Shown: one piece after another, positions 8,001 to 61,797 of the stretch
Numbering within the stretch: position 1 is the first letter of the stretch
How the letters are laid out: each line of letters opens with the position of its first letter
NCBI GenBank assembly: GCA_026936335.1
Contig: JAPMXV010000062.1
Location: 1-64,000, forward strand
DNA: 64,000 nt
Reading direction: 5' to 3'
Origin: Mantamonas sphyraenae STR306
Taxonomy: Eukaryota > Protista > CRuMs
Position numbers and translations under genes: made by a program
The notes under the pieces: generated by a model
Told to the model about the DNA's origin: nothing
Database searches by the model: none
What the model saw: the letters and a program-made list of their open reading frames with translations, nothing else

Positions 8001-8475
8001 CCTTGGCCACAACGGCCCACTTCTTGTGTTGCACAACCTGCCAAAATTTTTCCCGCCACCTCACACGTGTCAGCGCGCCCTCCAACGCCGCTTCCGATTG
8101 CCCCACCCGCTCCTTCTCACCCCCCCCCTCCACCGCGTTTCCCCCTCCCTCCATACACTACCACCCATTCACACATCCTACGCACCCCTCACGCCTTGCC
8201 AACACGTCGTCCACCACGACCATTTCCCTCTCTCCTGATCAACTCCCTACGCCCGCGCCTCCAGCCTCATACACCCTCCCTCCACCACGTGCACCTACCC
8301 GTGTCATGCCACCCAACGCCACCACAGTCCGATACGTCGTGAACAGGTCCAACATCTTCCCACCCAGCGTCGGAAACTTGGCAATCTTCTTCTTCAATTT
8401 CTTTTCATGGAACCGGCTCAGATCCGCCTCAAACAGCTCCCGCTTCTTGCGTTCACTCATACCCGAGCTGCTCAT
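5023..8475 (-). CDS. ARID2/BAF200/Rsc9-like chromatin-remodelling subunit with two ARID domains; intron 8038-8298
   Basis: N-terminal ARID (PTLGGKMLDLFTTYRTVVALGG|VVQHKKWAVVAKAL...LRMNYIKFL) split by a GTAGGT...CAG intron. Then VVLSLRSGVEREVDWAL, ARM-like helices, and a second ARID (PVFNGTEVDLYELFYTL...GGG...W...FKCHYVRHL). Start is 8475 or 8460. Confidence 0.85.
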
Positions 8476-9473
8476 TGCCTTTGATCTTTATCCACTTTGC
8501 CTGCGTCCGCCTGCGCCCCTCGCCCCACACGCGCCTCCTCCACCACGCCCACCAGCACTTTGTTCACAACTTCAGCGTGCTCCACAATCATCATGTGCCC
8601 TCCATGCACCTGCACCTGCTCCGCCCCGAGGTGTGCTGCCAGAAAGTAGCTGTGGTGGGTGTTCACAAGCCGATCGCCGCTCGTCGACAGAACCCGCTTC
8701 GGACAATCCGTCGCCGCCAGCCTCGACAGTCTCTCGTCACTCAAACGATGCGTCGCCACTGCGCAAACTTGGCCCAAAACACCAGCCATCGACGGCGGGC
8801 CGTTTGCCTTCCACAGTGCAAAGTATAGGTCGTACAACCACGACCGATTCGTTTTGCCCACTACATCATCGCTTGAGACGTCCTGCACAGCGTCCAGGAA
8901 CGCCTTGTCGTAGTTCATCCCCAGTTCAATCTGAATCCGCGTCGCCGTCTCGCTCACTCCCCACATCATCAAATCCGGCAGCGTGCTCAACGGCGGCAAC
9001 GTCAGCGGAATCCAGTCCTCGTCAAAGTGGCCGCTATGTGTGTTGATCAACGTCAACGAAGCCAGTTCCAGATCCTCTCTCCCCTCCAGCTTCAGTGCGA
9101 GCTCCTGCGAAATCATTCCACCCATCGAATGCCCCACAACATGCACGCGCTCCCATCCCAGATGCTCCACAAGCTTCAGCGCGTCCTCGGCCAGCTGCTC
9201 CGTCGTGTACCTGCCCCATGGCGCACTCGACCCTCCCCAGCCCCGATTATCAAACACGCACACCTCACACCCTGCGTCCACGAGCGCCTCCACCTGCCAC
9301 ATCCACAATTCGCACGACGTGAGCAGACCCTGCACCAGGAGCACCTTGTCCTCCGCCTCCTCCTCTCCAAACACAGCAAACTTCAGCAGCACGTCCCCGC
9401 TCCACCAACCCCAATCCACACGCATGACCCCGCGCCGTCCTTGCTTCCGTGCACTGCTGTGCGGCGACGACAT
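8472..9473 (-). CDS. Alpha/beta-fold serine hydrolase
   Basis: FDNRGWGGS, nucleophile elbow GHSMGG, GDRLV (Asp) and GGHMM (His). Start is 9473 or 9425. Confidence 0.88.
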   Translation of the reverse strand: MSSPHSSARKQGRRGVMRVDWGWWSGDVLLKFAVFGEEEAEDKVLLVQGLLTSCELWMWQVEALVDAGCEVCVFDNRGWGGSSAPWGRYTTEQLAEDALKLVEHLGWERVHVVGHSMGGMISQELALKLEGREDLELASLTLINTHSGHFDEDWIPLTLPPLSTLPDLMMWGVSETATRIQIELGMNYDKAFLDAVQDVSSDDVVGKTNRSWLYDLYFALWKANGPPSMAGVLGQVCAVATHRLSDERLSRLAATDCPKRVLSTSGDRLVNTHHSYFLAAHLGAEQVQVHGGHMMIVEHAEVVNKVLVGVVEEARVGRGAQADAGKVDKDQRQ

Positions 9474-9534
9474 CTTCCTGTCCCGTCCCGAGTCCTTCGT
9501 CTTGGCCCCAGCCCCGCCATCCCAATCCCACCCC

Positions 9535-11465
9535 ATGACCAGGGAGAGCAAAAAGCGCAAGAATCCGCTCAACAAGAAGAACAAATCGGGGCACCCTGAC
9601 TTTAAGCGCCAGAAGGTCAAGGTCGGCCGCCGCATCGCTCCAAAGGCCGACACCGACACCACCGTGCGCTCCCGCAAGCTCATGATGCCCACCCAGAACG
9701 CAGTCATGGGCAAAAAGGGCAAGGCCGTAACCAAGCGTGCTCTCAACCTCAACGACCTCCTCGCCCAATGCAACCACTACAGCGAGTCGGTCCGCAAAGA
9801 CGCTGTTCTCGGCCTTCGCGAGCTCGTCACCTCCCACCCGCACGTCCTTGAAGGCCACCTTTCCCGCATCATTCTTGCTGCTGTCAAGCGCCTCACAGTA
9901 AGCGTCCACCCCCACCCCACCCCACCCCACCCCTTCTCCAGCCCCCACTGACCCCGAAGTACCAGGACGATGCCAAACTAGTCCGCGACGCCGTCAAGCT
10001 AATGGTCGAGCAGCTTCTCGACCAGGTCTCCCACACGGCAATGGGTCCGTTTCTTCCCACCATGTACCTTTACACCTGCACTGCCCTCACCCACGTCAGT
10101 GAGCGCGTCCGCCTCGACGCTCTGCATTTCGTCAACCTCCTTGTCCACCGCTACCCGGACGTCGCCTCACACTACCTCGACAAGCTACTGCCCAACTACA
10201 CTACCCTTCTCTCCTCCAAACGCGCCACTCTCAGCACCTCCCGCTCAAAGTCGCCTGCCCTCAGCAAAAAGGCTCGCCTCTCCGTCCTCCAGTCTCTTCG
10301 AGCCCTTCTCGAAGCCACCTCTGACCACCCTCTCCACGATGTCCAACCCGACGTTGACCACACCGACCATGTAACCATCTCCTTTGATCCCCACCGCCGC
10401 ACAGACGCCCGCTTCGCTCGCCGACTCCCCACTCAATCCGAAACCAACGACCTCCTCGACCTCGACGTCATCTCCTCCTCTTCCTCCACCTCCTCCACCT
10501 CTTCCACCACCACCTCATCCCTCTCCTCCTCCAACCCCCTCCTCCCGTTTGCTCTCGACGCAATCCCCCTCCTCGTCGAACTGTGGCTGGAGATCGACGA
10601 GGATGACGGCGACCTCCTCGACACCCTTGTCCACAACCTGTATTTATTGGTCGGCATCTGCACACATGCAGACACAGATCTCGGCCGTGGCCTCGACCTC
10701 TTTGCCGCCCATCTCGTCGCCGACTTTCCTTACTCCGTCAAGGACAATGCCATCGACCGGCGCGTCGCTCGCAAAGTCGACGCCTACATCGCCGCCACCA
10801 TGGCCCTGCTCCTGCGTGACGACTGGCTCCCGCTCCTCACTGAATATGTCGTCCACGAGCTCGACCTCTTTGCCGAACAAGAAGAAGACGACCTGTCCTA
10901 CGACAGCGAGCGCCTCGTTGTACACGTCGCCGTCGCCATTCTCGACCACTGTACAGACACTGACGACTCGAACGAGTTTTTCCGCGAGGCTATCCTCGAC
11001 GCCCTCCTCCGCCTCGAAGCCTCGGCACACACGCGCTCCAGACGCAAGGCTCTCTGCATCGACACTCTCGCAGAACTCATGCACTGGCCAGACATTGGTG
11101 TGCGCGAGCCCTGGATCCACCTGTTTGGCCGCCTCCTCTGGGAACTCAAGGATTCTCAGCCTCACCGTTCCGCCCTCATTCTCCGTGCCCTCCTCGACCT
11201 CGTCCGCCGTCCTGCAGGAGCCGACGTCCTCCCTGCCATCTCTCGTGCCCTTGTACCCTTCTTCCACGTCTCCGTCTCACGCAACGGCTCCACCCGCAGC
11301 GTCTACGGGCCTTTTGTCGCTCTTCCGCTCTCTGTCCGCAATCTCGCCCTCAATCTCGCCTGGTACCTTGATGATGCCCAATCGTCCTCCTCATCCTCGC
11401 CATCATCATCCCCTCTCAACGACGCCGTCGCTCTCGCCAAGGCCAAGCTCGAAACTGAACTCTGA
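9535..11465 (+). CDS. TEX10: TEX10/Ipi1 rixosome subunit (pre-60S processing); intron 9898-9965
   Basis: DFKRQKVKVGR, LLAQCNHYSESVRKDAVLGL and ALTHVSERVRLDAL. GTAAGC...CAG intron restores frame. Confidence 0.85.
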
Positions 11466-11481
11466 ACCTCCATTGCCTTGA

Positions 11482-13215: not shown

Positions 13216-13240
13216 GTCTGATATCACTCGCTCTCTCGCT

Positions 13241-13241
13241 T

Positions 13242-13276
<35 letters not shown>
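13241..13276 (+). repeat. (CT)n microsatellite in the DENN/RhoGEF divergent intergenic region
   Basis: Direct inspection. Confidence 0.9.
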
Positions 13277-13279
<3 letters not shown>

Positions 13280-15413: not shown

Positions 15414-15470
15414 CACAATGTATGTATGCACCGTAACACCTCTCATTCACTCAGTGAGCCGCGCTCGGGC

Positions 15471-19533: not shown

Positions 19534-19581
19534 CCTTCTTCTTGCCACATCCCGCGCAACACCGTCAGCACAAACAACACC

Positions 19582-21300
19582 ATGCACCACAAGCGCAAGT
19601 CCAAGAGTGCCATGGCCGAAGACCTGCACAGGCCCCTTCTGGACATGGCGTCTGGCAACGCCGACGATCCTGAACTCGTCGCCATCGACGTCGAAAACCA
19701 GTTTGACGACGAGCTCGTCAAGAACAGCCTCAGTGCCACGGCCACCCTCTTTCTCGACAAGGAAAAAGACGCAGAGGTGCGCCGCAAGTCTATCATCATG
19801 TTTCTCACCGGGCTCGTAGGCATCATCCTCATGATGATCGAGCTCGAGGTCGCCTGGGCCACAAGACGTCCCGTCCCCGAAGGAAACCCACCCGACCTCG
19901 GCAGCAACACCTTTTGGTGCGAAGCCCTCAAGGTAGCCCTCCTCTGCGACTCGGTTCTCCTCGGTACGTCTGCCCTCCGCACAACATCCTCCTCTCCACA
20001 CCGGCCCGCCACACATCACGCAAATTCTTCCACAAATCCAGTACCAACTCTCCCCACCCCCTCTCTCGCTCCCCTCCCCTCCCCTGCCTTGCATCTCCTC
20101 ACCATACCCGCCATCGCACGTATGTGCACCCCTTTTCACTTACGCCTGACCTCTCGCATCCTCCCCATGCCTCCTGCAGTCAGTCAACTCATCGACTACT
20201 ACCGCTTCCAAATCTACCTCGTCTCTCAGGAGTGGAAGGTGCTGCAGCTCAGCACCATGCAGCTCCTCCGTTCCACAGATATGTCTTGGTGGTTCTGGCT
20301 CGAGTTTCTCGTCTGTCTCGTCCATCCCATCCCGTTTCTCGACGCAGAGTTCAATGGCCACCCGCTCCTCAACGACAAAGTCGGCCTCTTTATGTTTGGC
20401 CGTCTCTACCTCCTCGTCCGCGTTCTTCGTGACACCAGCGATGTCTATCTCCAGCGCCGCGAGATTATCCAGGAGGACGAGCTGAACCGCGTCAAGGCAC
20501 CCAAGTTCAACTGGTTCCTCTCTGTCAAGAAGCTCTTCTACCAGAGCACCACTGCCTTTGTCATTGCCCTCTCATCTCTCGCCGTCCTCGTCATGGCCTT
20601 TTGCATTTATGTCTGCGAACGTGAACGCAACTACTCTCGCGACTCTGGCCAGTTCACACTCGCCACCAGTCTCTACTTTACCTGTGTTACCATGACCACC
20701 GTCGGCTACGGTGACATGACTCCCCTCTCCGACTGGGGCCGTGTCATGGCCATGGTCGCCGCCCTCCTCGGCCTGATCCTCTCCAGCTTCATGGTCGCCA
20801 TGGTCACCAACAAGCTCACCCTCCAAGAAAACGAACGCAGTGCAGTGCAGCACGTCAATCTCCGTGCCCTCGAGCGTGAAGAGATGCGTGCCGCCGTCCG
20901 CCTCATCGAACATCTCTGGTGGGTTGTCAAACAGGTTCGCGAACAACGCCGCCGCTCCCGTTCCGTCGCAGAAGCTGACGCCATCAGCCCCTGGTCCACC
21001 CATCAACGCAAGACCCTCCTCCTCGTCCGCCAGCTCCATCGCATCCGCAGGCGCCTCGGCCACGAACGCGAGCTCGACAACGATCGCTACGAGCGCGACT
21101 TTCAGGACATCAACGCACGCATCCTTCGCATCGAAAAGCGGCAAATCGATCTCACACGCGTGGTCAACAAGCTTGTCTGCGGCCAAGACGAGTCCCTCAC
21201 CTATGCCACTGTACGCGACCACCACCAGAGTCTACAGGAGCAGCTCTCCTCCATTCACGACATGGTCGCCACTGCTCTTGATGACAAGAAGCACTCATGA
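19582..21300 (+). CDS. SK/IK-type Ca2+-activated K+ channel (KCNN-like); intron 19964-20179
   Basis: [18 protein letters not shown], filter [12 protein letters not shown], a post-S6 calmodulin-binding-like region and a C-terminal coiled coil. Confidence 0.88.
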
Positions 21301-23930
21301 GCACATTCACCACCATCAGTCAGTCAAGGGGGAGACTGCACACATCACGCAGGCGCAGCCAACACAAAAGTCCCAACAAACACTCCCACACCCCCATGTT
21401 TGCTCGAAGTAGAGCACACGCAAAGAACACCCCAGGCGTCGTGTCCGCCTGTGCATTGGTTGCTTCCCACCACTTGACTCCCGCGCGTACAGCAGTCGCC
21501 CGAACAATCACCTCCGTCGCCTCACGACCTGCCGCCCGCCACTCCTCCCACACCACCCTCTCTGCGCGTCACACACACATCTCTACCCACAAACACACCT
21601 CGGCATTTCCTCGACGCGTCTCTCCGCTCGTGGCTTCCCTCTCGCCCGCCTCTTCGGCGGAATTTCCGCTTGTCCGCAGGTTCCACCTCGACGCACGCGC
21701 CCTAGCCCCTCAAGCTGGCCGTGCCGGCAAGCCTGGCCGTGGACCTTCCTCGGGCCACCACGCAGCTTCACAATCCGCAAACAAGGAATCCCTTGGCGAG
21801 ACACTCAGCCTGTACGCGCGAGATCTCAGCGCTGACGCAGAGAACGGCCGACTCGACCCGGTCATCGGCCGCCACGAAGTCGTTCGCCGCGTCATGCAGG
21901 TTCTCTCCAGACGCACAAAGAACAACCCCGTCCTCATTGGCGAGCCGGGTGTCGGCAAAACCGCCATCGTCGAAGGCCTCGCACAGGAGATTGCCAAGGG
22001 CGACGTCCCCGAGTCTCTCCGCAACAAGCGCGTCGTCTCGCTCGACCTCGCTGCCCTCGTAGCAGGCGCCTCCTACCGTGGCGAGTTTGAAGAGCGACTG
22101 AAAAAGGTGATTGCCGACGTTCATGCCGCAGACGGCGAGATCATACTTTTCATCGACGAGCTCCACACCCTCGTCGGCGCTGGCTCTTCCGGCGGCTCCA
22201 TGGATGCCTCCAATATGCTCAAGCCCGCCCTTGCCCGCGGTGATCTTCATTGCGTCGGCGCAACCACACTCAAGGAATACCGCGAACACATCGAGAAAGA
22301 CCCCGCGCTCGCACGACGCTTCCAGAGTGTTCTCGTGCAGGAGCCCTCTGTCGAAGAGACCGTCTCCATGCTGCGTCAGCTCAAGGAAAAGTATGAAATC
22401 CACCACGGCGTCCGTCTCAGCGACCCGGCCCTCGTCGCAGCAGCCACCCTCAGCAACCGCTACATCGCAGACCGCTTCCTCCCCGACAAGGCCATCGACC
22501 TCATCGACGAGGCCGCCAGCCGTCTCCGCCTCGAGCAGGAGTCCAAGCCCGACGAACTCGAGAAACTCGACCGCCAGATCATCATGCGCAAGATCGAGCT
22601 CGAATCCCTCAAGCAGGACAAGGACTCTGTATCTCGTCAGCGCCGCGAGAAGCTCGAGGCCACCATCCGCTCCCTGGAGCAAGAGAGCGCCCAGATGGCC
22701 ACCGTCTGGCAAGAGGAGCGCAAGAAGCTCAAGCAGATGCAGAATGCCGCCGAGGAGCTCGACGCTGCTCGCCTTGCCCTCGAGCGCGCCGAACGCACAG
22801 GCGACCTCGCACGCGCCAGCGAGCTCAAGTACGGTCGCATCCCGGAACTCGAAAAGATAGTTGCCGAGGCCGAAGCCGCAGAGAATGGCCAGGCGTCCAT
22901 GGTCGCTACCGCCGTCACCAGCGACCACATTGCAGAGGTCGTTTCACGGGCCACGGGCATCCCGGTCTCTAGCGTCATGATGGGTGAACGCGAACGGCTC
23001 CTACACCTCGAAGAGGAACTCGGCAGCCGCGTCGTTGGCCAGGATGAGGCTGTACGTGCCGTGGCAAACAGCGTGCGCAGCGCACGCGCAGGCTTGCAGG
23101 GCGTCGACAGACCTCTCGGCTCGTTCCTCTTTCTTGGCCCTACCGGCACGGGCAAGACCCAGCTGTGCAAGACCCTCTCCCAGTTCCTCTTTGACAACGA
23201 GCAAGCCATGACCCGCATCGACATGAGCGAGTACATGGACAAGTTTACCGTGTCGCGCCTCATCGGCGCTCCACCCGGCTACGTTGGCTACGACGAAGGA
23301 GGCGTCCTCACAGAGGCCGTCCGTAGGCGTCCCTATCAGGTCGTCCTCTTTGACGAGTTTGAAAAGGCCCACCAGGACGTATCCAACGTCCTCCTCCAGG
23401 TCCTCGACGACGGACGCCTCACAGACTCCCAAGGCCGCACAGTCGACTTTAAAAACACCATGGTTGTCATGACCAGCAACGTCGGCTCCGAAATCCTGTC
23501 CTCCCTACCCGAGGGAGTGCCCAGCTCCCAGGCACGCGATCGCGTCATGGCCCAGCTCCAAAGCCAGTTCCGGCCCGAGTTTCTCAACCGCATCGACGAC
23601 ATCGTCCTCTTCAACCGCCTCGGCCGCGAATCCATGAAGAACATCGTCGACATTCAGATCCACGAGCTCCAGCGCACCATCCGCGACAAGCGCATCACCC
23701 TCTCTGTCGACGACGACGGCCTTGCCTGGCTTGCTGACCGCGGCTACGATCCGGCCTACGGTGCACGTCCCCTCAAGCGCCTCATCCAAAAGGAGATTGT
23801 CCATCCCATGGCACGCAAGATCCTGCAGGGCGAAATCACAGACGGCCAGACCGTCCGCCTCCATCTCCGCAAGGATGACGGCGCCCTTGTCGACCAAGTG
23901 TTTGTTTTTGAGCCGGAAAAGGCAATGTAG
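21297..23930 (+). CDS. HSP78: Mitochondrial ClpB/Hsp78 disaggregase
   Basis: Two AAA+ modules ([16 protein letters not shown]), a middle domain, no Clp N-domain, and an Arg/Ser-rich acid-free N-terminus like a presequence. Start is 21297 or 21396. Confidence 0.93.
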
Positions 23931-28343: not shown

Positions 28344-30413
28344 ATGACGCTGCCTGTGACGTACCTGGGGATGGCGGTGTCCATTGCTGGCAACTTGCTC
28401 ATCTCCATCAGCCTGCTCCTGCAAAAGTACGCCCACATTGAAAACTCAAAGGTTCCTGAGTCAAGGCGTGCACCGTACTACAAACAGCCCACCTGGGTCC
28501 TCGGCCTCATCCTCATGGTTGCTGGCGAGTTTGGCAACTTCTTTGCCTTTTCGCTCGCTCCCGTCTACCTCGTCGCGCCTCTCGGTGCCGGTACGTCCCG
28601 CATGCCACAGCCCTATCCGCACGCCCTGTGCCCGCGCTGACATGGTCTCTCCATCTTCACTCCCCCATCCCCGCTTCCTCTCTGCCCGCAGTGTCTGTCG
28701 TGGCCAACGCTGTCCTCGCTGCAAAGTTTCTCGGCGAGACGATGCGCAAGCGCGACGTCGTCGGCGTCGCCATGGTTGTCGACGGCGCCACCATCATTGT
28801 TCTCATGGCCCCTCATGTATGTCTCTCTGACCTGCGTTTCCCTTCCGCGCATCCGTGCATCATGTTTCCCATTCTGTGACGCTCACCCGCCCCAAACTCG
28901 ACGTTGCCGTTTCCGGCCACCCTTTCTCACCGCCCCATTTCAGAGCGACGAAAAACTCAACATCCAGCTCCTGTACGACTACCTGTCTGCACCCACCTTC
29001 ATTGTGTACATATCCCTCCTCCTTGTTGTCACAGCCGTGCTGGTTGTCCTCGGTAAGCTCTCCATGTGTGGCCGTACGAGTCGCGTGGACGCGTGCGACC
29101 CTTGTCCCACACACTCGTCAATCTCCGCTCCCAAACATGCCCCTGTGCTCACCTTGCCACCCTTCCTCCCCCCCCGTCTCCCCCCACCTGCAGACAAGCG
29201 AGGGTACGGCTCACAAAATTGCGTGTTGCGCATCTGTATCTGCTCGCTGTTGGGCAGCATTTCCGTGATGTGCAGCAAGGGCGTGTCCACGTTCCTTCTG
29301 CTCACATTCAAGGGCACAAACATGTTTGTGTACCCAATCACCTACATCATGATCGGGGTGGCTGCTTTCACCCTGATCACCCAAATCAACTACCTCAACA
29401 AGAGCATGGAACGGTTCGGCGCCTCCGAGGTGGTGCCCATCTACTACGTGCTGTTCACCCTGAGCTCCATTGTCGGCGGCGTCGTCCTCTACCGCGAATT
29501 CTACCACATGGGCATGGTACGCGTGTTTGGCTTTGTCGGCGGCTGCATCCTCACCTTTTCGGGCGTCTACCTGATCACGAGCAACAAGGAGGTCGCCGAA
29601 CCCATCCTTGATATGCAAACACAAGACACAGAGGCTGCTGCCACGGGCGACCTTGTCAGCGACGACACCATCCAGGCCACTGTCAAGACTCCTCTGATCG
29701 AGAGCGATGGTAAGCCAGCCGCAGCTGTCCGCTCGGGCAACCACGCACTGTCGATTCGCTCCCGCCACAACGAGAACCTGCTCCTGCTCGACCGAGCACG
29801 CACCCGTCTCATGAACTGGTGTGTCCTGCAATTCCTAATTTCCACCCTCTTTCTCATCATCGGCATCCAACGCGTGTCCAATCCCGTGCCCACCGACGCC
29901 AGCGACGTCTCCAGCTGGAGCCATCTCGGCGAGTTTTACATTGTGTTTGGCTCGATCGGTCTCGTGGTGGGCATGGTGGGCATGTATGCGGCGCGTCACA
30001 CACACTCCAACGCCGCTCGCTACTACCTGTATGGCATGATTGTGCTTGTGGCGGCGTTTGTCATTTTCGCCTTTGTCAGCGCTGTCCAGTTTATCTTTAG
30101 CAGCTGCCCGACGATCGAGGAGGACACCGGTGTGTCCAAGAGCGAGGAATCCTTGGGCGTGTGTCAAACCGCCAAGGGTGTTGTGTTTGTGCCCATTGTA
30201 TTGCTTGTGGGCATCACCTGTCCGGCCTGCTGCTGTGCAGGGTGTTGGTTTTCCATTACCAACCTCCTCGACCGCTTGGCAGACCACAACCGCCTCCTCA
30301 GCCGCCTCTCACTCGGTGTGCACAGTGCCAACACTGTCACGCAGGTGGCAAGCATCGAGTTTGCCAAGCGCGAGCGGCGGAACACCACAACCAGCAGCAT
30401 TGGAAGCGTGTGA
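28344..30413 (+). CDS. NIPA-family Mg2+ transporter with an extra C-terminal 4-TM domain; introns 28591-28691, 28817-28943, 29053-29193
   Basis: WVLGLILMVAGEFGNFFAFSLAP..LVAPLGA, ICSLLGSISV and QINYLNKSMERF..VVPIYYV. All three introns restore frame. Confidence 0.9.
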
Positions 30414-31927
30414 TGTCGAAACGAGCAGAACACGACCACGACGACGCAATGGACGACACCACCCAAGAGGTGGACCACAAACGCCAACGTTCCACACCCT
30501 CGTCGTCGTCCAACTCACGCGTCTTGCTGAAGAACAACGGTCCAGGGGAGACGGCTCCGTTCTGCCACCATTGGCTGGGCCATCGTCGCCGATACTGTGG
30601 CCAGGAGCCTCTGAGCACGGGTGTGCTGTGCGGACAACACGTGAAACACCGCATTGACAGCAAAACGGGCAAAAAGCACAGCGAACGAGTGCCGTGTCCG
30701 CTGTATCCGGGCCACACGGTGTCGCGCAAGCGACTGAAAGCCCACCTGTTTGTGTGTCCGCACAGGCCGCGGGAACACACGCTGCCGTTCTACAACAAGG
30801 ACATCAACGTGCTTGGTCTGTCCTCTAGCTCTTACGTTGGTGAGGAGGGCACAGAGGGCGACCCACAGAGCGAGGAAGGCGAGGAAGGCGAAGGAGACGA
30901 CAACGACAAACACAACGAGGCAGCCGCGGCCAAAGCGGCTCACTACCTCCACCGGGTGCCGCGGGAAGAGTTTGACGCCATGCGGGAGAAAATAGAGAGG
31001 CTGTGGCAAGAGCTGGATGTGGGTGGGCAGATCGTAACCAGCGTGGTGGAGGAGGAACACCACCTTCCCGATGCGCTGAACACATTGGACAGGCAGAAGC
31101 ACCTACGCCAATGCCATGCCATTGTCAAGAACATGGACGCGGTGGGCCTCCTCTCCAAGGAGCACTGCTACGTGGAACTGGGCGCCGGCAGGGCGTTGTT
31201 GACCCTGACGGTGGGTGCTGAGCTGGGTGGCGTTGACGCAGTTGTGGTCGACCGCCAAGCTTCGCGTACAAAGGCGGAAAACAAGATGGCAAGCCTGGAC
31301 GAGTCGTGCCAAACTCGTCGCTACCGCGTGGACATCAAGGACATGGACCTGCGCAAGCTCAAGGTGCCGTTCATCGACGGGAATCAAACAGGGGAAGGTG
31401 GACGAACGGTGGTGGTGACTGGCAAACACCTGTGTGGAGCCGGCACGGATCTGGGGTTGGTGTGTGCGCTGCGAGCAGCCAACGGTGGAGACGCCGGAGT
31501 CGACAAAGAGTCAACCACGGACAGCGAGGAGGGCACACACGTGTCGCGAGTTCACGGCATCGCCATTGCCGTCTGCTGCCACCACGTGTGTAACCATGCG
31601 ATGTACGTCAACCCAGAATATGTGGAGAGCACTCTGGAGCTGGACAAGGAGGGATTTCAGCTGCTGACCAAGCTGAGCAGCTGGGCGACGCTTGCCAAGA
31701 AGACGCTGCTCAAACACGGCCCCAATGCAGAAAACGAACGGGTACAGGGGATGAGCTTCGACGAACGCCTCGATTATGGGCGCAAGTGCAAGCGACTGCT
31801 GGATTGGGGCCGTGTTCTGCATCTGCGCGAGCAGGGATTCGAGGCAGGGCTGGTCGAGTACTGCGAGCCCTCGACATCGGTGGAAAACGTGATGATTGTG
31901 GCATGGCGGGCACAAGATGCACAGTGA
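30413..31927 (+). CDS. TRMT13: tRNA:m(4)X modification enzyme TRM13
   Basis: CCCH and CHHC zinc fingers (RVPCPLYPGHTV...HLFVCP), ELGAGRA, DIKD, KHLCGAGTD, CCHH and RLLDWGR. Confidence 0.93.
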   Translation: MSKRAEHDHDDAMDDTTQEVDHKRQRSTPSSSSNSRVLLKNNGPGETAPFCHHWLGHRRRYCGQEPLSTGVLCGQHVKHRIDSKTGKKHSERVPCPLYPGHTVSRKRLKAHLFVCPHRPREHTLPFYNKDINVLGLSSSSYVGEEGTEGDPQSEEGEEGEGDDNDKHNEAAAAKAAHYLHRVPREEFDAMREKIERLWQELDVGGQIVTSVVEEEHHLPDALNTLDRQKHLRQCHAIVKNMDAVGLLSKEHCYVELGAGRALLTLTVGAELGGVDAVVVDRQASRTKAENKMASLDESCQTRRYRVDIKDMDLRKLKVPFIDGNQTGEGGRTVVVTGKHLCGAGTDLGLVCALRAANGGDAGVDKESTTDSEEGTHVSRVHGIAIAVCCHHVCNHAMYVNPEYVESTLELDKEGFQLLTKLSSWATLAKKTLLKHGPNAENERVQGMSFDERLDYGRKCKRLLDWGRVLHLREQGFEAGLVEYCEPSTSVENVMIVAWRAQDAQ

Positions 31928-53247: not shown

Positions 53248-56200
53248 TCAGCTGTTGATCAGGCGCTTGCGCAGATGCTGGTTGATGCGCTTGTTGCGCT
53301 TGCGGTCAACATCAAAGGCTGGGTCGTCGATTTCACTGGGTACGGCGCCAAAGGGCCCCACCATGGCAGGTTCTTTGATGTTGGCCGTGTCGTCGCCGTC
53401 CTCGTGGGTCATGTACACCTGGCGCATGCCGAGGGAACCCATACCCACGGCGACGGCCAGCAGGGTGAGGCTGAGGATTTCAAAGATGAGCATCCAGCCC
53501 TCCACCTCGGGCACACACTGCTTGACCCAGTGGTAGTGCAGGGTCTGGCAGCCCTGCAGACCGATGGCCACTGTAACTACGGCCCTGTCTGGAGACGTGC
53601 TGTTGCACTCGTAGTTGATGACGAGCTGGCGAGCCAGTGTGGTGTTGACCACACCCCCCAGAGCAAGATCGCCGCTCGCCCACACCTGTACATACGGATG
53701 GGCACTCACATTGACATACTTGACCACCTGTGTGGTGCCCGAGAAGCCTTGCAGGCCCTGCGGGTCCACGTACATGGAAAATGCATCCTGCTTGTCGGTC
53801 CACTCGCTGACAAACACGTGTGCACTTCCGTGGGATTTGCCACGCATCCGTGCCTCGGCCTCCTCTCGCTTCCACTGCGCGGTTGTCATGCCATCACGGA
53901 TCACGCCTGTCTTTGGTGCCCCCTCTGCCAGCGCATTCACGCTGAGCCCCTGTCGGAAGCCTGGACATTGTTTGTACCAGCTGATGTTCAGATTCTGGAA
54001 CGGAGGCTCCTGCACGAGCAGCAGCAGCTCTGTGATGCCGCACCATTGGCCGCAGGTGTACGAGGTACTCACCGTACCATTGCCTGTGGCTTCTGTGATG
54101 AGCCCGCCTGTGCCGAGGGTGCCGTTGACACTTGCGTCGAGGAAGGTGGGCTGAGCCACGGTAAGCTGCGGCGCCTGCATGGCCTGCGGTTGAGACTGGC
54201 GCACGTACAGATAAAAGGTGGTTTGGTCCACACTGGTAGGGAGGACGTTCTGCAAGTTGTCGATGTCTGTAGGGTTCCATCGCGGGGCCACCACGCCGTT
54301 GGCAACCACGTCGTGGAACATGCTGCCGCCACCGTCGGGGATGGTCGACACGTACAGCGACGATCGCACACCGCCAGATTTCTTGATCCAACCGACACGC
54401 ACGGCGTCAAAGGGTGGGATGAGAAGGGCAAACTCAAACACCACACGTCCGGGCTTGGAGCAAGCCATGTCAATGTACAGCGTACGAGCGGTTGCGCTGA
54501 GGTTGCCACTCTGTGCAAGATCGCCCGAGAGCACGGGTTGACAAATGCCCGTGGGCGTCAGCGTCAGCGAGGGGGCCTCGTACGGTTGTTCGTGTGCCAC
54601 GTTGTCCATGTTGAAGGACAGCTGCAGACCAAACACCTCGCCCTCCAGCTCCATGACTGGATCTTTGGCCGACCAAGCGGGCGTGACAATGCCATCGATG
54701 ACCACGTCGTTGCGGTAGGGCGCGGAGCCGCCGTAAAGACGAGGACGCCAAGGCCCGCAGATTTTGATCCATGTAAAGACAATCGCTGTGTACGGGGACA
54801 CGTCCATGGTGACGGTGATCTGAGAACGACCGGGCCGAGAACAGGTGAATTGGGTGACCATGGTCTGTGCAGGCTGACCTTGCCTGAGAGTGCCGGCGCC
54901 TGTGATGTTGCCTCCTTGCAAGCGCACCTGGACGACGGTGGGATCAGCCACGTCAATGACCGGTGCCCCAAAGGCCTGATCACCGTTGTTGCCACGCATG
55001 TACAGGTGGAAGGTGTACTGCAACTGGTCGTTCTGCATCTCCAGGTCGCCGTCAAGATTGGATTCCACACCGGTGTGGCCTCGCCGTTGCTGACAATGTC
55101 GTGCAGGCCTGCCGACGTGCCAATGTCAAAGCCTGGTCGGAACACGTGTGTGGCACACTCCTTGACAAAGGCAAAGCTGACGCTGTCAAACGGAGGCAGC
55201 GGAATGGTCACTGTGACAAGCGATTTGCCGTTGCTGGCACAGGTGAACGCCAGCGTCAACGGCAACGCCTGTGCGGTGCCGTTGAGGCGCAGGGCATGCG
55301 ACGCCTCGCCACTGGTGGCCACCGTCAGCATGGTGGGCTGTTGGACAACCACTGTGGGAGTGCCCATCTCCTGGGTGGGAGCTCGTCCTGCGGTGTCCAG
55401 CGACACGTACATGGTGGTGGACAACACCAAATCGTCCATTTCTGTGTGCACAGGCGAGTTGACGGACCACACGGGCTCAGCGACGCCGTTGGAGACCACG
55501 TCACGGCGACCAGGCGCGGTGGACACGAACAAGCCTCGGCAGTTGCTTGCACACAGTTTGGTGAATCCAAACAAGGGTGGGGCAAAGCCCAGAGACGAGG
55601 GCAGCAGAGGCGTGGCCACATGCACAGCCACAGAGCCCGGTGCAAGGCAGGTGAAGTTGAGACGCAGCGGACGCGGGTTGTCGGCACCCACGGTGCCATT
55701 GACAGCCATGGAGCCCGATGCCACCAAGTGGAGGATGTCTGTGTTGGCTACAGTGATGTTTGGTGTGGCGTACGCCTGTTTGCCAGCGTCGGCGCTGGCC
55801 ATCTGCCAGTAAAAGTCGACCGAAGTAGTGTCTGCGCTGATGTCTGTGTCGGGCGGGATGGCTGTGTTCCATGCGGGCTCGGTGATGCCATTGTTGATCA
55901 CATCGAAGCGACCCGGGGCTGTGGACACAGTCCATCCGTGTCGTGTGGAGGCACACACAACTCGGAAGCCAAAGGTGGGGGCCACAAAGCCACGCGGTTG
56001 GAGCGTGATGGAAACCGCTGGCTTGACCGAGGCCTGCAGACAGTGGAGGCCAAGGTGCAATTGCAACGGACTGCCCTCTTGCAAGTTGCCACCGTGAAGC
56101 AGCGCTGCAGAGGTGTTTGCTGTGCTCACTGTGAGCTGGGAGGGCGCAGAGACGGCAATGGTTGTTTGCAAAAGGCTCTGTTGCGGCTGTTCGCTGCCTG

Positions 56201-57019
56201 CGAGCAGCTGCACGACAAAGTGGCTGCTGCTGCTTTCCAGCTCCATGTTGGACGCAGGCAACCAGGCAATTGTGGTCTCCCCGTTGCTGACCACATCAGC
56301 CAGGTTGGTCTGGTCGACACGGTCAGCTTGGGTCGAGCAGCTGCGAAAGTGTGTGAGCGCGTGAGTGGGCAGAGGGTCAGGTTTTTTGGCACAAACGGGA
56401 CACGCGCAAGCGTGTTGCATCATGGGACCTGTGGACGGCATTGGATGGGGGGAGTGTGGGAGGGCTGAAAGCACATACAGTCGCAGATCTTGATCCAGGT
56501 GAAATAGACGGTGTCGTAGCCCGGGAGGACAAGGGCGACGGTGGTCTGCGTGGATCCCTGCACACTGTTGCAGGTGTACTGAATACGCAGAGGGACTTCT
56601 GTGGTGCCCACGTCCAGGGCAGTGGCATTAAATACAGAGGCAGTGGCCATGTTTGGGTGGGCCACAGACACAGTGGGCACAAGGACGTGCTGGGTGCCCT
56701 CTTTCATCCGCAGGTAAAACGTGGTGCTCATGCTTTCGCCATGCACCTCGTACCGCGTGTTAAACGTCACATTCGGGTTCCACAGTGGCTCTGCAATGCC
56801 ATCGTTGACGACGTCTGCAGTTCCGCCGGCCTGCAAGGCGACCTGGAAGTTTAGCTGGAACAAGCCTGCGCAGTGAACGGCCACGGGACATGCATGTGAG
56901 CAGAGAACAACCAGCACGGTGGATGAGGATGCGCATGGAGGATAGGAAGCAGGGAAGGCGTGCCTACCTAGGACGCACGGACTCAGCAGCAGGAGCAGAA
57001 GCAGGGGCAGAAGTCGCAT
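53248..57019 (-). CDS. Type I membrane/surface protein with eight ~130-aa repeats; introns 56866-56967 and 56341-56478; frameshifts near 56308 and 55060
   Basis: Signal peptide MRLLPLLLLLLLS, repeats DVVxNGxxxPxW...C...F.W.K.C, a single C-terminal TM and a short tail. Confidence 0.8.
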
Positions 57020-57184
57020 GGTGGCTGCACCAGCGCACCGCCGCAGGGTCGACAGTATGAGGTTGAATGCCATCCCAGAGTCATCAGTGGGTGTGAAAGA
57101 GGGTGGAGAGATGGACAAGAGGAGCACAGAAGGATGGATGGGTGTGCGTGCCGAGCACGGTGCCAAACAAAGCCTGGCTCCACC

Positions 57185-59359
57185 ATGTCGTCACGACCCT
57201 CGCCAATGTCGCCCGGTGGGAGAGGACGGGGACGGGGGCGAGCAGCTGGGCGAGGTCAGCGGACGAACAGCGGCTTCTCTCCAAAGGTGGTGAAGAAGAT
57301 GCGCGACGAGACGCTTGCAGCAGGATCCAGCAGCACGGGCAAGCCAGCCCTGAACAACGAGGCCAAGGAGGATGCAGAAACGGACGACACCGAGAATGAC
57401 AAGACCGTTCCGGGTGCGGTGGAGACTTCCAACGCGGTGGGGGACGAGAGAAACGACGAGACGAAGAAAGCGCGCGAGGAGGAGAAAGTCAACGCAAGCA
57501 GCCAGGACGAGGTGGCGCAGCTGAAACAGAAAATGGAAGCACAAGAGGCTAGTTTGAACAAACAGATAGAGGAAGCACACAGGGAAACAGAAGCAGCCAA
57601 GCTGGAAGCGACGCAGGCGAGGGAAAAGGCCGATGCGGATTTGAAACGAGCGCACGAGGCAAACGAGGAGATGGAGAGGAAACACAAAGAGGTGCAGGAG
57701 GCCATTGAGGTCGCTCGCAAGGACAAGGAGCAGTCGGATAGGCAGGCACAAGAGGCAGCGCAGCAGGCGGCGAGTCTAGAGTCGGAGCTGCGGGCAACAA
57801 AGACACGCATGGAGAAAGTGTTGAAGGAACGGACGGAACTGGAACAACAGGCAGAGTCACTCACGAGGGAGGTGCGTGAGGAGCACACAAGGAGCGAACA
57901 GTTGGCAGGAGAGGTGCAGGCACTGAAAACGGCGCTGGCAAAGGAGAAGGAGCAGGCACAGAGCATGGTGGAAGGTAAGGAGAAGGCGCTGCAAGAACTA
58001 AAGGAGGAGCATGAAGCCATCAAGAGCAAGCTGAGGAAGGGAGAGGAGGAGCTGAGCAAGGGGCGAACACGATCGAGCACTCTGGACAACACACTTCGCA
58101 CACAGGGGGCTCGCCTTGCAGAGCTGGAAGCTCAACACAAGGCGTTGACAGAGGAGGTGGAGCAAACGAGGAAGAAGGCAGCGAGTGCAGAGCGTCAGCT
58201 GGCGTCGAGTGCGGAGAAACGCAAAACGCTGGAGGCAGAGCTGACGGAAGCGCGCACGGCGCAGAGCAAGGCGGCAGAGGAACAAGCGGTCTTGCAACGA
58301 CAGGTCAAGGACTTGAAGGAGCAGAAGCACGACGTGGCGGAGAGATTGGAGAGGGCGCAGAAGGAACGGGACGAGGCAGTCGCCGCAAAGCGACAGGTCG
58401 AGTTGGCGAGCAAACAGGCGGATTCACAGGTGGAACAAGTGCGCGCAGAGATGAAAGGAAAGGTGGAACAGGTGAGGGCAGAGATGAAGGGACAGGTGGA
58501 ACAGGTGAAGGCAGAGATGGCGGCACAGGTGGCGCAGGAGAAGCAGGCGCGGGAAAAGGCAGAGGCGGAACTGCGACAGCAGGAAAGCGGGGCCGAGGAG
58601 CTCAACTTGCGCATGCAGGAGATGGAAAGGCAGCAGAATGCGGCAACGAGGCAGGTGGAAGCCGAGTTGCAGCAGGCCAAAGACGACATGGCACAGGCCA
58701 GGGCAGAAGAGGCGGACGCCGTGAGGCGGTACACGGAGCTGGAAAAGAAAGTGAAAGAGGCTCAAACAACGTCACAGGAGGCGACGCAAGAGACTGAGCA
58801 GCTCAAGGCCAAACTGAGGGCCAGCGAGAGTCAGTTGAAGAGCGTCCAGCGGGAAAAGGCAAACGCAGAGAAACAAGTGGCGAAACTGGAGGCACAGGCA
58901 AAGGGCAGCGACGCAGAGAAGCAGCGGAGCATCGAAAAGATCAAGCGAGCCTCTGAGCAGGAGGTGAGGAGCTTGGAAAAGACACTGGCCAAGCAGGAAA
59001 CGCGGGAGTCGCAGCGTGAAGCGCAACTCAAGGACTTGCAGCAATCGCTGCAGGAGGCAACATCGGCCCTAAGCAAGGCTCGCGACGATGTGAGTGAGCA
59101 CGAGAATCAGACCCGGGGCTTGCGTGAGCGCGTGCGTGAGTTGGAGCACACACGGAGGGCACTGCAACGCGATCTGATCGATCTGGAGGCCAAGAACAAA
59201 GGCATGGAAACGGCGTTGAGCAACTGGGGAGCAGAATCCGCAACGACATCGGGGTCGTGGCATGGCACGCTCGTGCTGGTTCTGCTGACAGTGTTGTGCA
59301 CCATGCTTCTGAGCAGCATGGTCCAACGAGGTTTCCATCCCATGCGACGACCGGCATGA
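57185..59359 (+). CDS. Long coiled-coil tail-anchored membrane protein (golgin- or KASH-like architecture)
   Basis: About 600 aa of heptads, TM TLVLVLLTVLCTMLLSSMV, and a short tail QRGFHPMRRPA*. Confidence 0.75.
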   Translation: MSSRPSPMSPGGRGRGRGRAAGRGQRTNSGFSPKVVKKMRDETLAAGSSSTGKPALNNEAKEDAETDDTENDKTVPGAVETSNAVGDERNDETKKAREEEKVNASSQDEVAQLKQKMEAQEASLNKQIEEAHRETEAAKLEATQAREKADADLKRAHEANEEMERKHKEVQEAIEVARKDKEQSDRQAQEAAQQAASLESELRATKTRMEKVLKERTELEQQAESLTREVREEHTRSEQLAGEVQALKTALAKEKEQAQSMVEGKEKALQELKEEHEAIKSKLRKGEEELSKGRTRSSTLDNTLRTQGARLAELEAQHKALTEEVEQTRKKAASAERQLASSAEKRKTLEAELTEARTAQSKAAEEQAVLQRQVKDLKEQKHDVAERLERAQKERDEAVAAKRQVELASKQADSQVEQVRAEMKGKVEQVRAEMKGQVEQVKAEMAAQVAQEKQAREKAEAELRQQESGAEELNLRMQEMERQQNAATRQVEAELQQAKDDMAQARAEEADAVRRYTELEKKVKEAQTTSQEATQETEQLKAKLRASESQLKSVQREKANAEKQVAKLEAQAKGSDAEKQRSIEKIKRASEQEVRSLEKTLAKQETRESQREAQLKDLQQSLQEATSALSKARDDVSEHENQTRGLRERVRELEHTRRALQRDLIDLEAKNKGMETALSNWGAESATTSGSWHGTLVLVLLTVLCTMLLSSMVQRGFHPMRRPA

Positions 59360-59401
59360 ATTGAACACACCCACTTTCTCCATTGCTTTGCGTTCCACAC
59401 G

Positions 59402-60460
59402 TCACACATCGGCACTGCTTGTTTGCTCCGTAGTCTCCTCGGCACTCTCTTGGGTGTCGGCGTACTGTGTCATCCACAGCTTCTCCTCGTCTTTGCGCAG
59501 GACCGGGAGCGAGGGAATGACCAGCTCCTGCTTTGTGTAGCCGCCTGTTTCGTCAAAGGAGGCGGCCTTGTTGAGGTCTTCGTAGCCGAGTTCACGTTGT
59601 GTGTACTCGCGGGTGAGGTAGTCAGAGCCAAACACATGATGGACGCGTGTGTCGTAGCAGCGCACGACAACTCCGTCCACGCGCATCCACATGCGCTGCA
59701 GGATGAAGAACCCCGATGGCATCACCCGCACACGTACAGTGACAATGCTTGTGCCGTTGTCCGACAGCTCGTCCTCATATAGAATCACCTCCTGCACAAA
59801 AAGCAGCGGCTCTTCCTGCCGCAGCAGATCATAGTCGATTCCCTCCGTGCTCGTGCTCACCAGAGGCATCAGCCCCTTTTTGCTGTCCTCTCCCTCGTCC
59901 CCCTTGCTTACCACGCTCAGCGTGCCGTTGTAGCAGCTGCTGTATGTCCAGTCGAACGTCTGTTCCTGCAGCTCGATCGACTCGTCCTTGGTTCTGTCCT
60001 CCCCTCTGTGTCAGCCCTACTCGAGAGTCACACGGTCGCTAACCAACGCAATTTGCGTTCCCCTCCTGTGTCTCACCACTCACCGTGCCTCCCACAGGTC
60101 CGAGTACGCCACTTTGATCTTCTTGTCCTCGTCCACAGCGGCACAGGGCGCGAGTGCGTCTCGTGCGTTGAACTCGAGTCGGAAGCCGCTTTCCTCGTGC
60201 TCCACCACCAGCTTGTTCTCTCCAAACACCATCTCTGGCAGCTCGGGCAGATGAAGACTCTCGCACCACTCTGCCCGCTCCGACTCGGTCAGGATGACGC
60301 TGCGTGTGCGCAGTACACTCCAGCCGCGAAAGCGCACCCGTCTGTGTTTCCCTCGTCCACATGCTCCACCTTGAACTGCTCCGGGTGTCAATGGGTGGCC
60401 ATGCGTACGCCCAACTCCGTGCAAGACGAGAAGAGTGAGAGAGTGCGTGATACCCACCAT
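59402..60460 (-). CDS. TIPRL: TIP41/TIPRL PP2A regulator; intron 59994-60083, possibly also 60376-60457
   Basis: LPEMVFGEN, FNARDAL, FDWTY, LYEDELSDNG and RVMP...RVDGV. Confidence 0.92.
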
Positions 60461-60462
60461 GG

Positions 60463-61797
60463 TCAAGAAGTGCTCGTTTGTTCTTTGCTGGGCAGGCGCA
60501 CAAGCACACGAATGCGCTTCTGATCAGTCCCATCCATGGCTTGTGTCTCGCGGTCACCCTTGTCCTTGTGCAGTGTCGTGTCTCCGTCTCCTTCCACCTG
60601 CTTTCTCTTTCGCCTGGCACTGTCTTGTTGTCCTTCAATCTTTGCTTCCTCTCCTACCGTCTCCTGCTGCTCCTCCTCAGGCGGCGTCTCTGGCTGTGGT
60701 TCGGGCAACCCCAACTTTTCGCGCACATACTGCATGTTGATGGTCACTGTGTCTGCCTTGCAGTAGCAGGGCTTTGCCTCGCTGCCGTACTTCTCCGCCC
60801 ACAGCGGTGTGGCAAAGTTGACGCTCTCTGCGCAATTGAAGCCCAGATTGAAGCCGCTGTGGTAACCGTAGGGATACGTGATCATCACCTCTCCCTCTTC
60901 CTGTACACAGCGGGAGACGTGGATGCCCCGTTCTTCGAGCAACTCGGGCTCGATCAAGGCCACCTTATGGCGCAGAAACTGGGAGCAGGTGCGTTTCAGT
61001 TCGGGAAACAGCTCTGCCGCAAGTGCCTCCAGTTTGGGGCCCTCGTCGGGAGAGACGCCGTACCAGAATTTGGGCGCCCCAAAGTGAAGAAAGTTGATGG
61101 AGTGCAGATCCATGTCTTCGGTGTGCCAACAGAAGCAGGCCTTCCAGCTGCCAAAGTAGAGATAGGCCTGATTGATTCCCGGCACGTCGGTGCCGTCGAG
61201 GACGTTGAGGACCGACTTGAGCCGGTTGATGTTCCACGGGTTCTCGCGAACGTTCTTGTCGTCGCTGAGTTCAAACAGACTGCCCAGCATGTCTGCGCCG
61301 TACACGGCAGACTTGACATGTGCCCCCTTCCAGAACAGCCGTTCCACTTCGCGGCAGTAGGCCAGCTTGTGTTGTTCGTCGTCAAAGCCGTTGGCAAAGT
61401 CGCCCTGGGCCTTTCGCCGGCTCACCGTCGGCACGTTGCGTTCGTAGCGGCGGCGATACTCGGCCACCGTCATTGCATGGCCCTCCACATTGGCCACGTG
61501 GTACACTCCGTCCGATCCGTACAGTTCCTGGATGATGGGCGATGGGATATTCAGTGCACCGACCTTTTCTGCCAGCGCCTCGTAGTCTGGACACTGCTCA
61601 CGTCGCCACTCTGCCGGAGGCACAATCTTGGCCACGCCAGCCTGACGGAAACGAGGGTCTGCCTCGCATGACTCAACATACGCCTGGAAGTTGGCAAACT
61701 CGTCCGCGGTGGGGCGGAACACAGGCACGTCCAGCGCGAACGCCGGCGTCTCGCGCTGCGACATCCAACTTTCTGGTTGTTGGTCCTGCGCACGCAT
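60463..61797 (-). CDS. KDM4: KDM4/JMJD2-family histone demethylase (JmjN + JmjC only)
   Basis: PVFRPTADEF, GVAKIVPP, YGAD, FCWHTEDMDL and GYHSGFNLGFNCAESVNFA. Confidence 0.92.
   Translation of the reverse strand: MRAQDQQPESWMSQRETPAFALDVPVFRPTADEFANFQAYVESCEADPRFRQAGVAKIVPPAEWRREQCPDYEALAEKVGALNIPSPIIQELYGSDGVYHVANVEGHAMTVAEYRRRYERNVPTVSRRKAQGDFANGFDDEQHKLAYCREVERLFWKGAHVKSAVYGADMLGSLFELSDDKNVRENPWNINRLKSVLNVLDGTDVPGINQAYLYFGSWKACFCWHTEDMDLHSINFLHFGAPKFWYGVSPDEGPKLEALAAELFPELKRTCSQFLRHKVALIEPELLEERGIHVSRCVQEEGEVMITYPYGYHSGFNLGFNCAESVNFATPLWAEKYGSEAKPCYCKADTVTINMQYVREKLGLPEPQPETPPEEEQQETVGEEAKIEGQQDSARRKRKQVEGDGDTTLHKDKGDRETQAMDGTDQKRIRVLVRLPSKEQTSTS

Follow-up and report, generated by a model that had tools for sequence, protein, structure and literature searches.

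Do overlapping stop and start codons between neighbouring genes of an intron-containing nuclear genome mark bicistronic mRNAs on which ribosomes reinitiate, or are they simply the extreme of very tight gene packing? The question is raised by four head-to-tail gene pairs of Mantamonas sphyraenae in a 64-kb window (that is, the whole stretch of DNA presented here, 64,000 nucleotides in length). The four junctions are exactly as first described: ATGA at 8475–8472 (minus strand) between an alpha/beta-hydrolase and an ARID gene (J1), ATGA at 21297–21300 (plus strand) between a K+ channel and a ClpB gene (J2), TGATG at 30411–30415 (plus strand) between a NIPA and a TRM13 gene (J3) and TGAccATG at 60465–60458 (minus strand) between a JmjC-KDM4 and a TIP41 gene (J4). 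At every one of them, a candidate restart AUG overlaps or adjoins the stop. Pfam bears out all eight gene identities and places functionally unrelated partners in each of the four pairs. A first-pass annotation had counted these junctions as four of seven tandem pairs; the four stand, and the total is only approximate, as a further ATGATG junction had been missed (Table 1) and some apparent tandem pairs on the contig map are exons of a single gene.

On the basis of the sequence, we consider that the four junctions probably mark the lower extreme of normal gene spacing in an ultra-compact nuclear genome, with independent but overlapping transcription units. Every gene would have an mRNA to itself; transcription of the downstream gene would start tens to hundreds of nucleotides before the end of the upstream coding sequence, its short leader being contained there, and the upstream mRNA would be polyadenylated at or shortly past its stop, a few codons into the downstream gene. 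The starts of ARID and TIP41 do lie within 0–15 nt of the upstream stop; ClpB and TRM13 may use the ATG that overlaps the stop or else the in-frame ATG that follows (+95 and +35, respectively).

Table 1. Features at the four junctions and at one further junction (positions in the window)
Feature	Position	Strand	Remarks
ARID exon 2	5023..8037	-	second, complete ARID domain; Pfam ARID 4e-19, ORF residues 774-859
ARID intron, 261 nt, phase 0	8038..8298	-	GTAGGT...CTGAC...CAG
ARID exon 1	8299..8475	-	ATG 8475-8473 overlaps hydrolase stop (ATGA); other ATG at 8460
Alpha/beta-hydrolase gene, ORF	8472..9773	-	first ATG 9705; Pfam Abhydrolase_1 4e-26
K+ channel gene, 3' part	19582..21300	+	Pfam Ion_trans_2, weak SK_channel match; ORF 18625-21300, start provisional
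ClpB/Hsp78-like gene	21297..23930	+	ATG 21297 overlaps channel stop (ATGA); Pfam AAA_2 and ClpB_D2-small
NIPA-type transporter, last exon	28641..30413	+	stop TGA 30411-30413; Pfam Mg_trans_NIPA 2e-35
TRM13 gene	30413..31927	+	ATG 30413-30415 takes its A from the NIPA stop (TGATG); alternative 30449; Pfam TRM13 8e-60
Further ATGATG stop/start-type junction	56425-56420	-	flanking ORFs without Pfam family, may be exons of one gene
TIP41 exon 2, with stop	59402..59993	-	Pfam TIP41 2e-36
TIP41 intron, 90 nt	59994..60083	-	GTGAGT...CTGAC...CAG
TIP41 exon 1	60084..60460	-	ATG 60460-60458, 2 nt past KDM4 stop
JmjN/JmjC (KDM4-like) gene	60463..62154	-	stop TGA 60465-60463; Pfam JmjC 1e-38 and JmjN

How closely the genes abut depends on where the downstream proteins begin. 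Two of the predicted starts are firm, namely those of ARID (8475 or 8460) and TIP41 (60460), and the earlier observation that their conserved regions follow soon after the junction ATG was confirmed, the domains beginning 11 and 43 residues on. ARID profile positions 2–47 match residues 12–58 of exon 1, and the domain carries on in frame into exon 2 (VVQHKKWAVVAKALELP...); given that the profile aligns from residue 12 and that the domain resumes after a phase-0 intron, the ARID start is one of these two ATGs. For TIP41, the ATG at 60460 is the sole in-frame ATG ahead of the conserved block, which is matched by human TIPRL (5w0x) from residue 44 on; the following Met is residue 77, within the conserved fold, where the Pfam TIP41 domain begins. 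The frame of its second exon agrees with an ORF at 59402–60010 that bears TIP41 profile positions 78–173. For both spliced models, profile searches were run exon by exon and not on the joined proteins. The TIP41 gene may also have an in-frame intron of 81 nt right after its ATG, which would leave the start unaffected. The alternative in-frame ATGs noted in the first pass exist (8460 for ARID, 21396 for ClpB and 30449 for TRM13), and in the latter two genes translation may start at either ATG (21297 or 21396 for ClpB; 30413 or 30449 for TRM13).

The packing of the surrounding genes was assessed in 264 kb of the contig (positions 1–264000; that is, the flagged 64-kb window and 200 kb outside it), which is about 1% of the genome, with genes called by a crude in-house caller. 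The M. sphyraenae assembly comprises 25,061,354 bp in 78 contigs (GC content of about 59%), and 9,416 genes, mostly mono-exonic and 2,282 bp long on average, have been reported in its 25.06 Mb (PMC10492846). In the 264 kb, the orientation of gene pairs is random (39 convergent, 38 divergent and 88 tandem), with no directional gene clusters among these classes. Convergent stop-to-stop gaps include values of 8, 10, 16 and 29 nt (median of about 54 nt, n = 39), many of them falling between 8 and 60 nt, and spacers of 55–130 nt are the typical class between tandem genes. Very short spacers are found in every orientation in this sample, as would be expected of overlapping transcription units that arise from compaction. 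Rfam and tRNA scans of the 64-kb window found nothing, including no Rfam match to an SL RNA (a novel SL would escape such a scan), and a search for promoter k-mers upstream of divergent starts brought out only the intron branch-point-like ACTGAC.

Given that the stop itself supplies most of the letters of an overlapping ATG (A + TGA gives ATGA, and xxA + TG gives xxATG), such an ATG is expected by chance in about one quarter of the cases in which the downstream frame is open. An A precedes roughly one TGA stop in four (14/54 at convergent and 7/41 at tandem ends), and the letters ATGA or xxA-TG occur at 18 of 69 convergent gene ends (26%) versus 14 of 61 tandem ones (23%; Fisher p = 0.69; 264 kb), so that the proposed excess of −4/−1 overlaps over background is not borne out in the comparison of tandem with convergent ends. 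Among eligible tandem pairs (that is, those in which the downstream reading frame continues unbroken through the upstream stop), an overlapping ATG is present in 7 of 15 against an expectation of 26% (P = 0.07), and a second count of open-frame pairs gave 8 of 16 (P = 0.035), marginally above expectation; both counts include the flagged window, and in the 200 kb outside it the number is 3 of 9 (26% expected). No restart rule was found either: past the upstream stop, the ATG encountered first lies in the frame of the next gene in 14 of 50 tandem pairs (28%, close to the one third or so that chance would give). Such overlaps show no excess over chance in these comparisons, and the four junctions fit extreme packing together with chance.

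The ends of genes carry a further regularity. A motif of the AATGAA/TGAATG type is concentrated between −6 and +20 of stops and hardly occurs in sense coding sequence, a position from which we infer that it is a putative 3'-end signal. The hydrolase stop lies in the context AATGAG, which is close to this motif, and the stop of the ARID gene is followed by GAATGA. At J2, J3 and J4, no AATGA, GAATG or TGAAT occurs for more than 1.4 kb past the upstream stop, and fewer tandem than convergent ends have an AATG-type 3' motif (8/38 and 31/60, respectively; p = 0.003), a scarcity that could reflect some upstream genes reading through into their neighbours. Upstream of the junction ATGs there are ATG-free stretches of 113 nt (J1), 374 nt (J3) and 70 nt (J4), which would give room for AUG-free leaders within the upstream coding sequence and lend indirect support to transcripts that start inside the upstream gene; the last 371 nt of NIPA have no ATG in any frame, the longest such stretch among 107 gene ends (P of about 0.007).

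One rival reading is that at least some pairs yield true bicistronic mRNAs, one capped and polyadenylated transcript on which translation reinitiates at the overlapping or adjacent AUG. We regard this as unlikely, although the four junctions have the geometry (−4, −1 and +2) of known reinitiation sites, the scarcity of 3' motifs past J2–J4 and at tandem ends in general points in its direction, 80S-mediated, cis-element-independent reinitiation is possible in yeast under selection (PMC11952965) and green algae translate polycistronic mRNAs (PMC7896298). Against it stand the lack of enrichment of the letter motif at tandem over convergent ends, the lack of a first-AUG-after-stop rule across the contig, the random gene orientation without directional clusters, the unrelated functions of the partners, and upstream ORFs of about 410 aa or longer in which a sense AUG density of one per 60 nt makes leaky scanning implausible. 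After a long ORF, reinitiation is as a rule inefficient, and where it depends on TURBS it uses motif 1 (UGGGA) as an upstream tethering element within about 40–90 nt; TGGGA is present upstream of J4 only (−72) and absent within 120 nt upstream of J1–J3. The first-pass annotation had offered two branches, and of these the bicistronic one finds no support in these features, whereas a leader or promoter inside the upstream coding sequence fits compaction and is the one that we prefer. It is quite improbable, too, that the firmly abutting pairs at least (hydrolase–ARID and KDM4–TIP41) are bicistronic, with 80S or 40S ribosomes reinitiating after the long ORF; the scarcity of 3' signals past co-oriented upstream genes would then reflect frequent read-through co-transcription in a free-living eukaryote of a deep-branching lineage. 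Should single pairs prove to be bicistronic, they would be an example, rare among cellular genes, of translation restarting after a long ORF. There is very little likelihood that the junctions are artefacts of the gene models, for example, through a 3' intron that removes the upstream 'stop' or an unseen upstream exon that provides the downstream start. Introns do occur in the window (in the ARID, TIP41, NIPA and glutaminase genes), and several apparent tandem 'stops' on the contig fall in GTAAGT or GTAGGT donor sites; however, at all four junctions the upstream coding score ends within 0–15 nt of the stop (9 nt before the hydrolase TGA at 8474–8472, 6 nt before the channel TGA at 21298–21300, at the stop itself for NIPA and 15 nt before that of the KDM4-like gene) with no donor-like site overlapping it, and the beginning of the ARID and TIP41 domains 11 and 43 residues after the junction ATG likewise speaks against an artefact. 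Stop-codon reassignment was also rejected (TGA is the main stop, and the coding score ends there), as was a read-through fusion of the paired genes, the partners of which lie in different frames.

A refinement that is compatible with separate, overlapping transcription units, and to which we give a little less than an even chance, is that the overlaps at ClpB and TRM13 are unused, translation starting at 21396 and 30449, so that only ARID and TIP41 truly abut their neighbours; starts at the next ATG would mean small but real spacers of 95 and 35 nt, to be set beside the 55–130 nt that are typical of tandem pairs. The 96 nt between the channel stop and the alternative ClpB ATG (21300–21395) are CA-rich and ATG-free, contain AACAAA and resemble other tandem spacers or leaders, and the codon-score core of ClpB begins only at 21777, far downstream of both candidates. 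For TRM13, alignment of the N terminus with homologues revealed nothing conserved before the first zinc-finger Cys is reached (the best identity in the homologue search was at most 32%, with no Mantamonas relatives among the matches). On the other side, the 374 nt without ATG upstream of 30413 would make this codon the first AUG of any leader that starts in that stretch, and when ClpB is considered in both lengths (877 and 844 aa), each candidate N terminus translates into a plausible basic presequence. A Kozak-like start-context matrix built from 31–51 starts is too weak to pick between the candidate ATGs and gave no discriminating consensus.

Compacted eukaryotic genomes with overlapping transcription have been described for the microsporidia Encephalitozoon cuniculi and Antonospora locustae and for nucleomorphs (Williams et al. 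2005 and Corradi et al. 2008, as summarized in PMC3629993). In the features given there, Mantamonas resembles them in having near-zero spacers in all orientations, unrelated neighbours and random orientation, and its transcripts would likewise be expected to start in the upstream gene or to end in the downstream one, an overlap that in Mantamonas is predicted. Unlike these reduced parasites and endosymbionts, it is a flagellate that lives freely and has a genome of 25 Mb. The polycistronic loci of green algae (Gallaher et al. 2021, PMC7896298) are similar in that they consist of nuclear, intron-containing genes closely spaced in the same orientation, whose two ORFs have been proposed to be translated independently; however, in the algae the upstream ORFs are small, the inter-ORF spacers have medians of 212–260 nt and the data favour leaky scanning, whereas the Mantamonas upstream ORFs are long and AUG-rich, with spacers of −4 to +2 nt, and do not show the combination of a short, AUG-poor upstream ORF and a weak start context on which leaky scanning relies. 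With bacterial translational coupling (ATGA or TGATG in operons) the junctions share the letter pattern, but in Mantamonas this pattern is not enriched over the convergent-end control, the partners are unrelated and not arranged in directional clusters, and the genes are eukaryotic and contain introns. In RNA viruses of the calicivirus and influenza B type, termination–reinitiation at overlapping stop and start codons is TURBS-dependent; the AUGA and UAAUG-like geometry is common to both, but in Mantamonas TGGGA accompanies one junction in four, and the genes are cellular, with long upstream ORFs.

If the compaction reading holds, ATGA overlaps in the M. sphyraenae genome are not to be taken as operons, and gene models and transcript assemblies for Mantamonas must permit starts that overlap the previous stop, leaders within coding sequence and transcripts that end in the gene that follows. 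Polyadenylation signals near or coupled to the stop are known from other compact protists (AGTRAA in Giardia and TAAA in Trichomonas). Mantamonas is similar in having a short A-rich hexamer (AATGAA/TGAATG) on the stop or no more than about 20 nt from it, often taking in the TGA, which would imply very short 3' UTRs; the hexamer itself differs, and the lineage (CRuMs) is unrelated. As the genome paper (PMC10492846) treats neither intergenic spacing nor UTRs, a free-living CRuMs flagellate that combines microsporidian-like packing with a putative stop-proximal signal of the AATGAA type may provide a useful comparison for the shrinkage of promoters and terminators.

The four tandem junctions J1–J4 (that is, sites at which an upstream stop and a downstream ATG overlap or nearly touch) were proposed in the first-pass annotation to reflect a bicistronic or translational-coupling system, or downstream promoters inside the upstream coding sequence. 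The letters at all four match the sequence exactly and Pfam supports all eight gene identities, and we conclude that the pattern is the one that extreme compaction and stop-codon composition would produce; the pairs themselves would probably be independent, overlapping transcription units. All statistics refer to C62:1-264000 (C62, contig JAPMXV010000062.1; that is, the window and the next 200 kb) and to a simple codon-score gene caller written for this analysis.

Coordinates of junctions and associated features (junction letters read from the sequence, gene identities from Pfam)
Feature	Coordinates	Strand	Description	ATG-free stretch before ATG
J1	8475-8472	-	ATGA; alpha/beta hydrolase then ARID	113 nt
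J2	21297-21300	+	ATGA; K+ channel (Ion_trans_2, weak SK) then ClpB	13 nt; 96 nt before alternative ATG 21396
J3	30411-30415	+	TGATG; NIPA then TRM13	374 nt; last 371 nt of the NIPA-type gene (30040-30413) free of ATG in any frame
J4	60465-60458	-	TGA-cc-ATG; JmjN/JmjC (KDM4) then TIP41	70 nt
ARID intron	8298-8038	-	261 nt, phase 0, GTAGGT...CTGAC...CAG	
Convergent stop pairs, 8-42 nt apart	11465/11482, 15436/15471, 23930/23966, 37389/37400, 43742/43751, 59359/59402			
Further stop/start-type junction	56420-56425	-	ATGATG; flanking ORFs without Pfam family	
ORFs possibly representing exons of a single large gene	56420-57190, 54564-56627, 53248-55125			
Inverted duplication	C62:197071-198984 / C62:207760-209671		same gene pair; TGATG junctions and flanks identical	
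Microsatellite-like tracts (examples)	C62:155040-155077, 204800-204835, 230490-230523			

The stop codon itself contributes most letters of an overlapping ATG: TGA makes up ~72% of stops, and roughly one TGA in four follows directly on an A (14/54 convergent and 7/41 tandem ends). ATGA or xxA-TG (a stop ending in A, then TG) was not enriched at tandem ends (14/61) relative to convergent ends (18/69; Fisher p=0.69), at which no gene begins. Among tandem pairs whose downstream reading frame continues open through the stop, in the single frame permitting overlap, an overlapping ATG occurred in 7 of 15 against a control rate of 26% (P=0.07), or in 8 of 16 with J1 added (P=0.035). Both samples include the window, which had been singled out for just such overlaps; for the 200 kb beyond it, the count was 3 of 9. 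At most, overlapping ATGs exceed expectation marginally.

Two of the four downstream starts (ARID and TIP41) truly abut the preceding stop, and here the earlier observation that conserved regions begin soon after the ATG was confirmed by searches of these spliced models, one exon at a time. From residue 12 of its translation onward, the exon beginning at 8475 matches the ARID profile, with the domain resuming in exon 2 past the intron, and the ARID start is 8475 or 8460, in either case no more than 12 nt past the hydrolase stop. For TIP41, alignment to human TIPRL (5w0x) runs from residue 44, the sole in-frame ATG ahead of the conserved block is 60460 and the next Met is residue 77, within the conserved fold; a possible in-frame 81-nt intron directly past the ATG leaves the start unaffected. 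The fallback ATGs at 8460, 21396 (ClpB) and 30449 (TRM13) are alternatives to the junction ATGs, either start being possible. ClpB N-termini from 21297 and 21396 are both basic and presequence-like, and the 96 nt separating these candidates are CA-rich and ATG-free, contain AACAAA and resemble other spacers on the contig. As TRM13 homologues show no conservation ahead of the first zinc-finger Cys, 30413 and 30449 are both possible starts. The ARID gene (5023-8475, minus strand) encodes two ARID domains, the N-terminal one split by the intron and the C-terminal one complete. Introns at 8038-8298 (-), 59994-60083 (-) and upstream of 10002 (+) carry a branch-point-like CTGAC/ACTGAC motif positioned 10-30 nt upstream of the 3' AG; donor sites in window introns read GTAGGT, GTGAGT or GTAAGT.

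Packing is extreme in all orientations. Convergent stop-to-stop distances (8, 10, 16, 29, 31 ... nt) have a median of ~54 nt (n=39), and where stops lie 8-42 nt apart the 3' UTRs must therefore run into one another or into coding sequence of the facing gene. A strong enrichment of AATGAA, GAATGA, TGAATG and the complementary k-mers marks the region from -6 to +20 of stops, the AATGAA-type motif often taking in the TGA itself. The motif is all but missing from sense CDS, and AATGAA was absent from 5,000 random sense-CDS windows; judged from its position, the motif is best read as a candidate stop-proximal 3'-end (polyadenylation) signal, which would imply very short 3' UTRs. Unexpectedly, convergent ends carry AATG-type motifs within -6..+45 more often (31/60) than do tandem ends (8/38 once donor-site-like 'stops' are removed; p=0.003); in tandem 3' flanks the enriched sequences are AACAAA, GAAACA and (TG)n. 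This scarcity at tandem ends would fit avoidance of AATGAA, whose ATG would place an upstream AUG in the following gene's leader, and would also fit read-through of some upstream genes into their neighbours. The hydrolase stop at J1 sits within AATGAG; downstream of the J2–J4 upstream genes, no AATGA, GAATG or TGAAT occurs for >1.4 kb. The ATG-free stretches before the junction ATGs are such as a leader lacking AUGs and lying within the upstream coding sequence would need; only that at J3 is individually unusual, and measured up to the NIPA stop it is the longest at any of 107 gene ends of the contig (P ~0.007). Many tandem and divergent spacers carry microsatellite-like (CA)n, (GT)n or (GA)n tracts immediately ahead of the start codon.

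Bicistronic reinitiation at some of the pairs is, in our judgement, quite improbable. Yeast can be selected for 80S-ribosome re-initiation independent of cis-elements (PMC11952965), and reinitiation is thus not impossible in principle; against it stand the lack of overlap enrichment at tandem over convergent ends and of any general restart rule, the first ATG past the upstream stop sharing the frame of the downstream gene in only 14 of 50 tandem pairs (28%; chance ~1/3). Spacers are not kept clear of other AUGs, and nothing therefore points to scan-on-and-restart as a mechanism acting contig-wide. The junction geometry matches that of bacterial coupling, but overlaps are not enriched, partners are unrelated and no directional gene clusters were found among the orientation classes (39 convergent, 38 divergent and 88 tandem, as at random), all as tested on this contig. 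Viral termination-reinitiation shares this geometry, although the upstream ORFs here are long cellular genes, and TGGGA (TURBS motif 1) lies upstream of only one of the four junctions. In green-algal polycistrons the upstream ORFs are small, spacers measure ~200 nt and data favour leaky scanning (PMC7896298), which is implausible at the Mantamonas junctions given one AUG per 60 nt. The closest match is overlapping transcription in compacted genomes: according to PMC3629993 (citing Williams 2005, Corradi 2008), transcripts often begin in upstream genes in Encephalitozoon and end in downstream genes in Antonospora.

The assembly (25,061,354 bases, 78 contigs, ~59% GC) is reported as a FALCON assembly of 25.06 Mb in 78 contigs with 59.19% GC and 9,416 genes (mean 2,282 bp, 'mostly mono-exonic'; PMC10492846), figures from which ~86% of the genome is computed to be genic. 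Poly(A) RNA-seq of M. sphyraenae publicly exists. The window opens in CCCTAA telomere repeats (1-120). Across the telomere-adjacent 1-28000, plus-strand GC skew is steadily -0.2 to -0.4, independent of gene orientation; beyond these 28 kb, it tracks gene strand.
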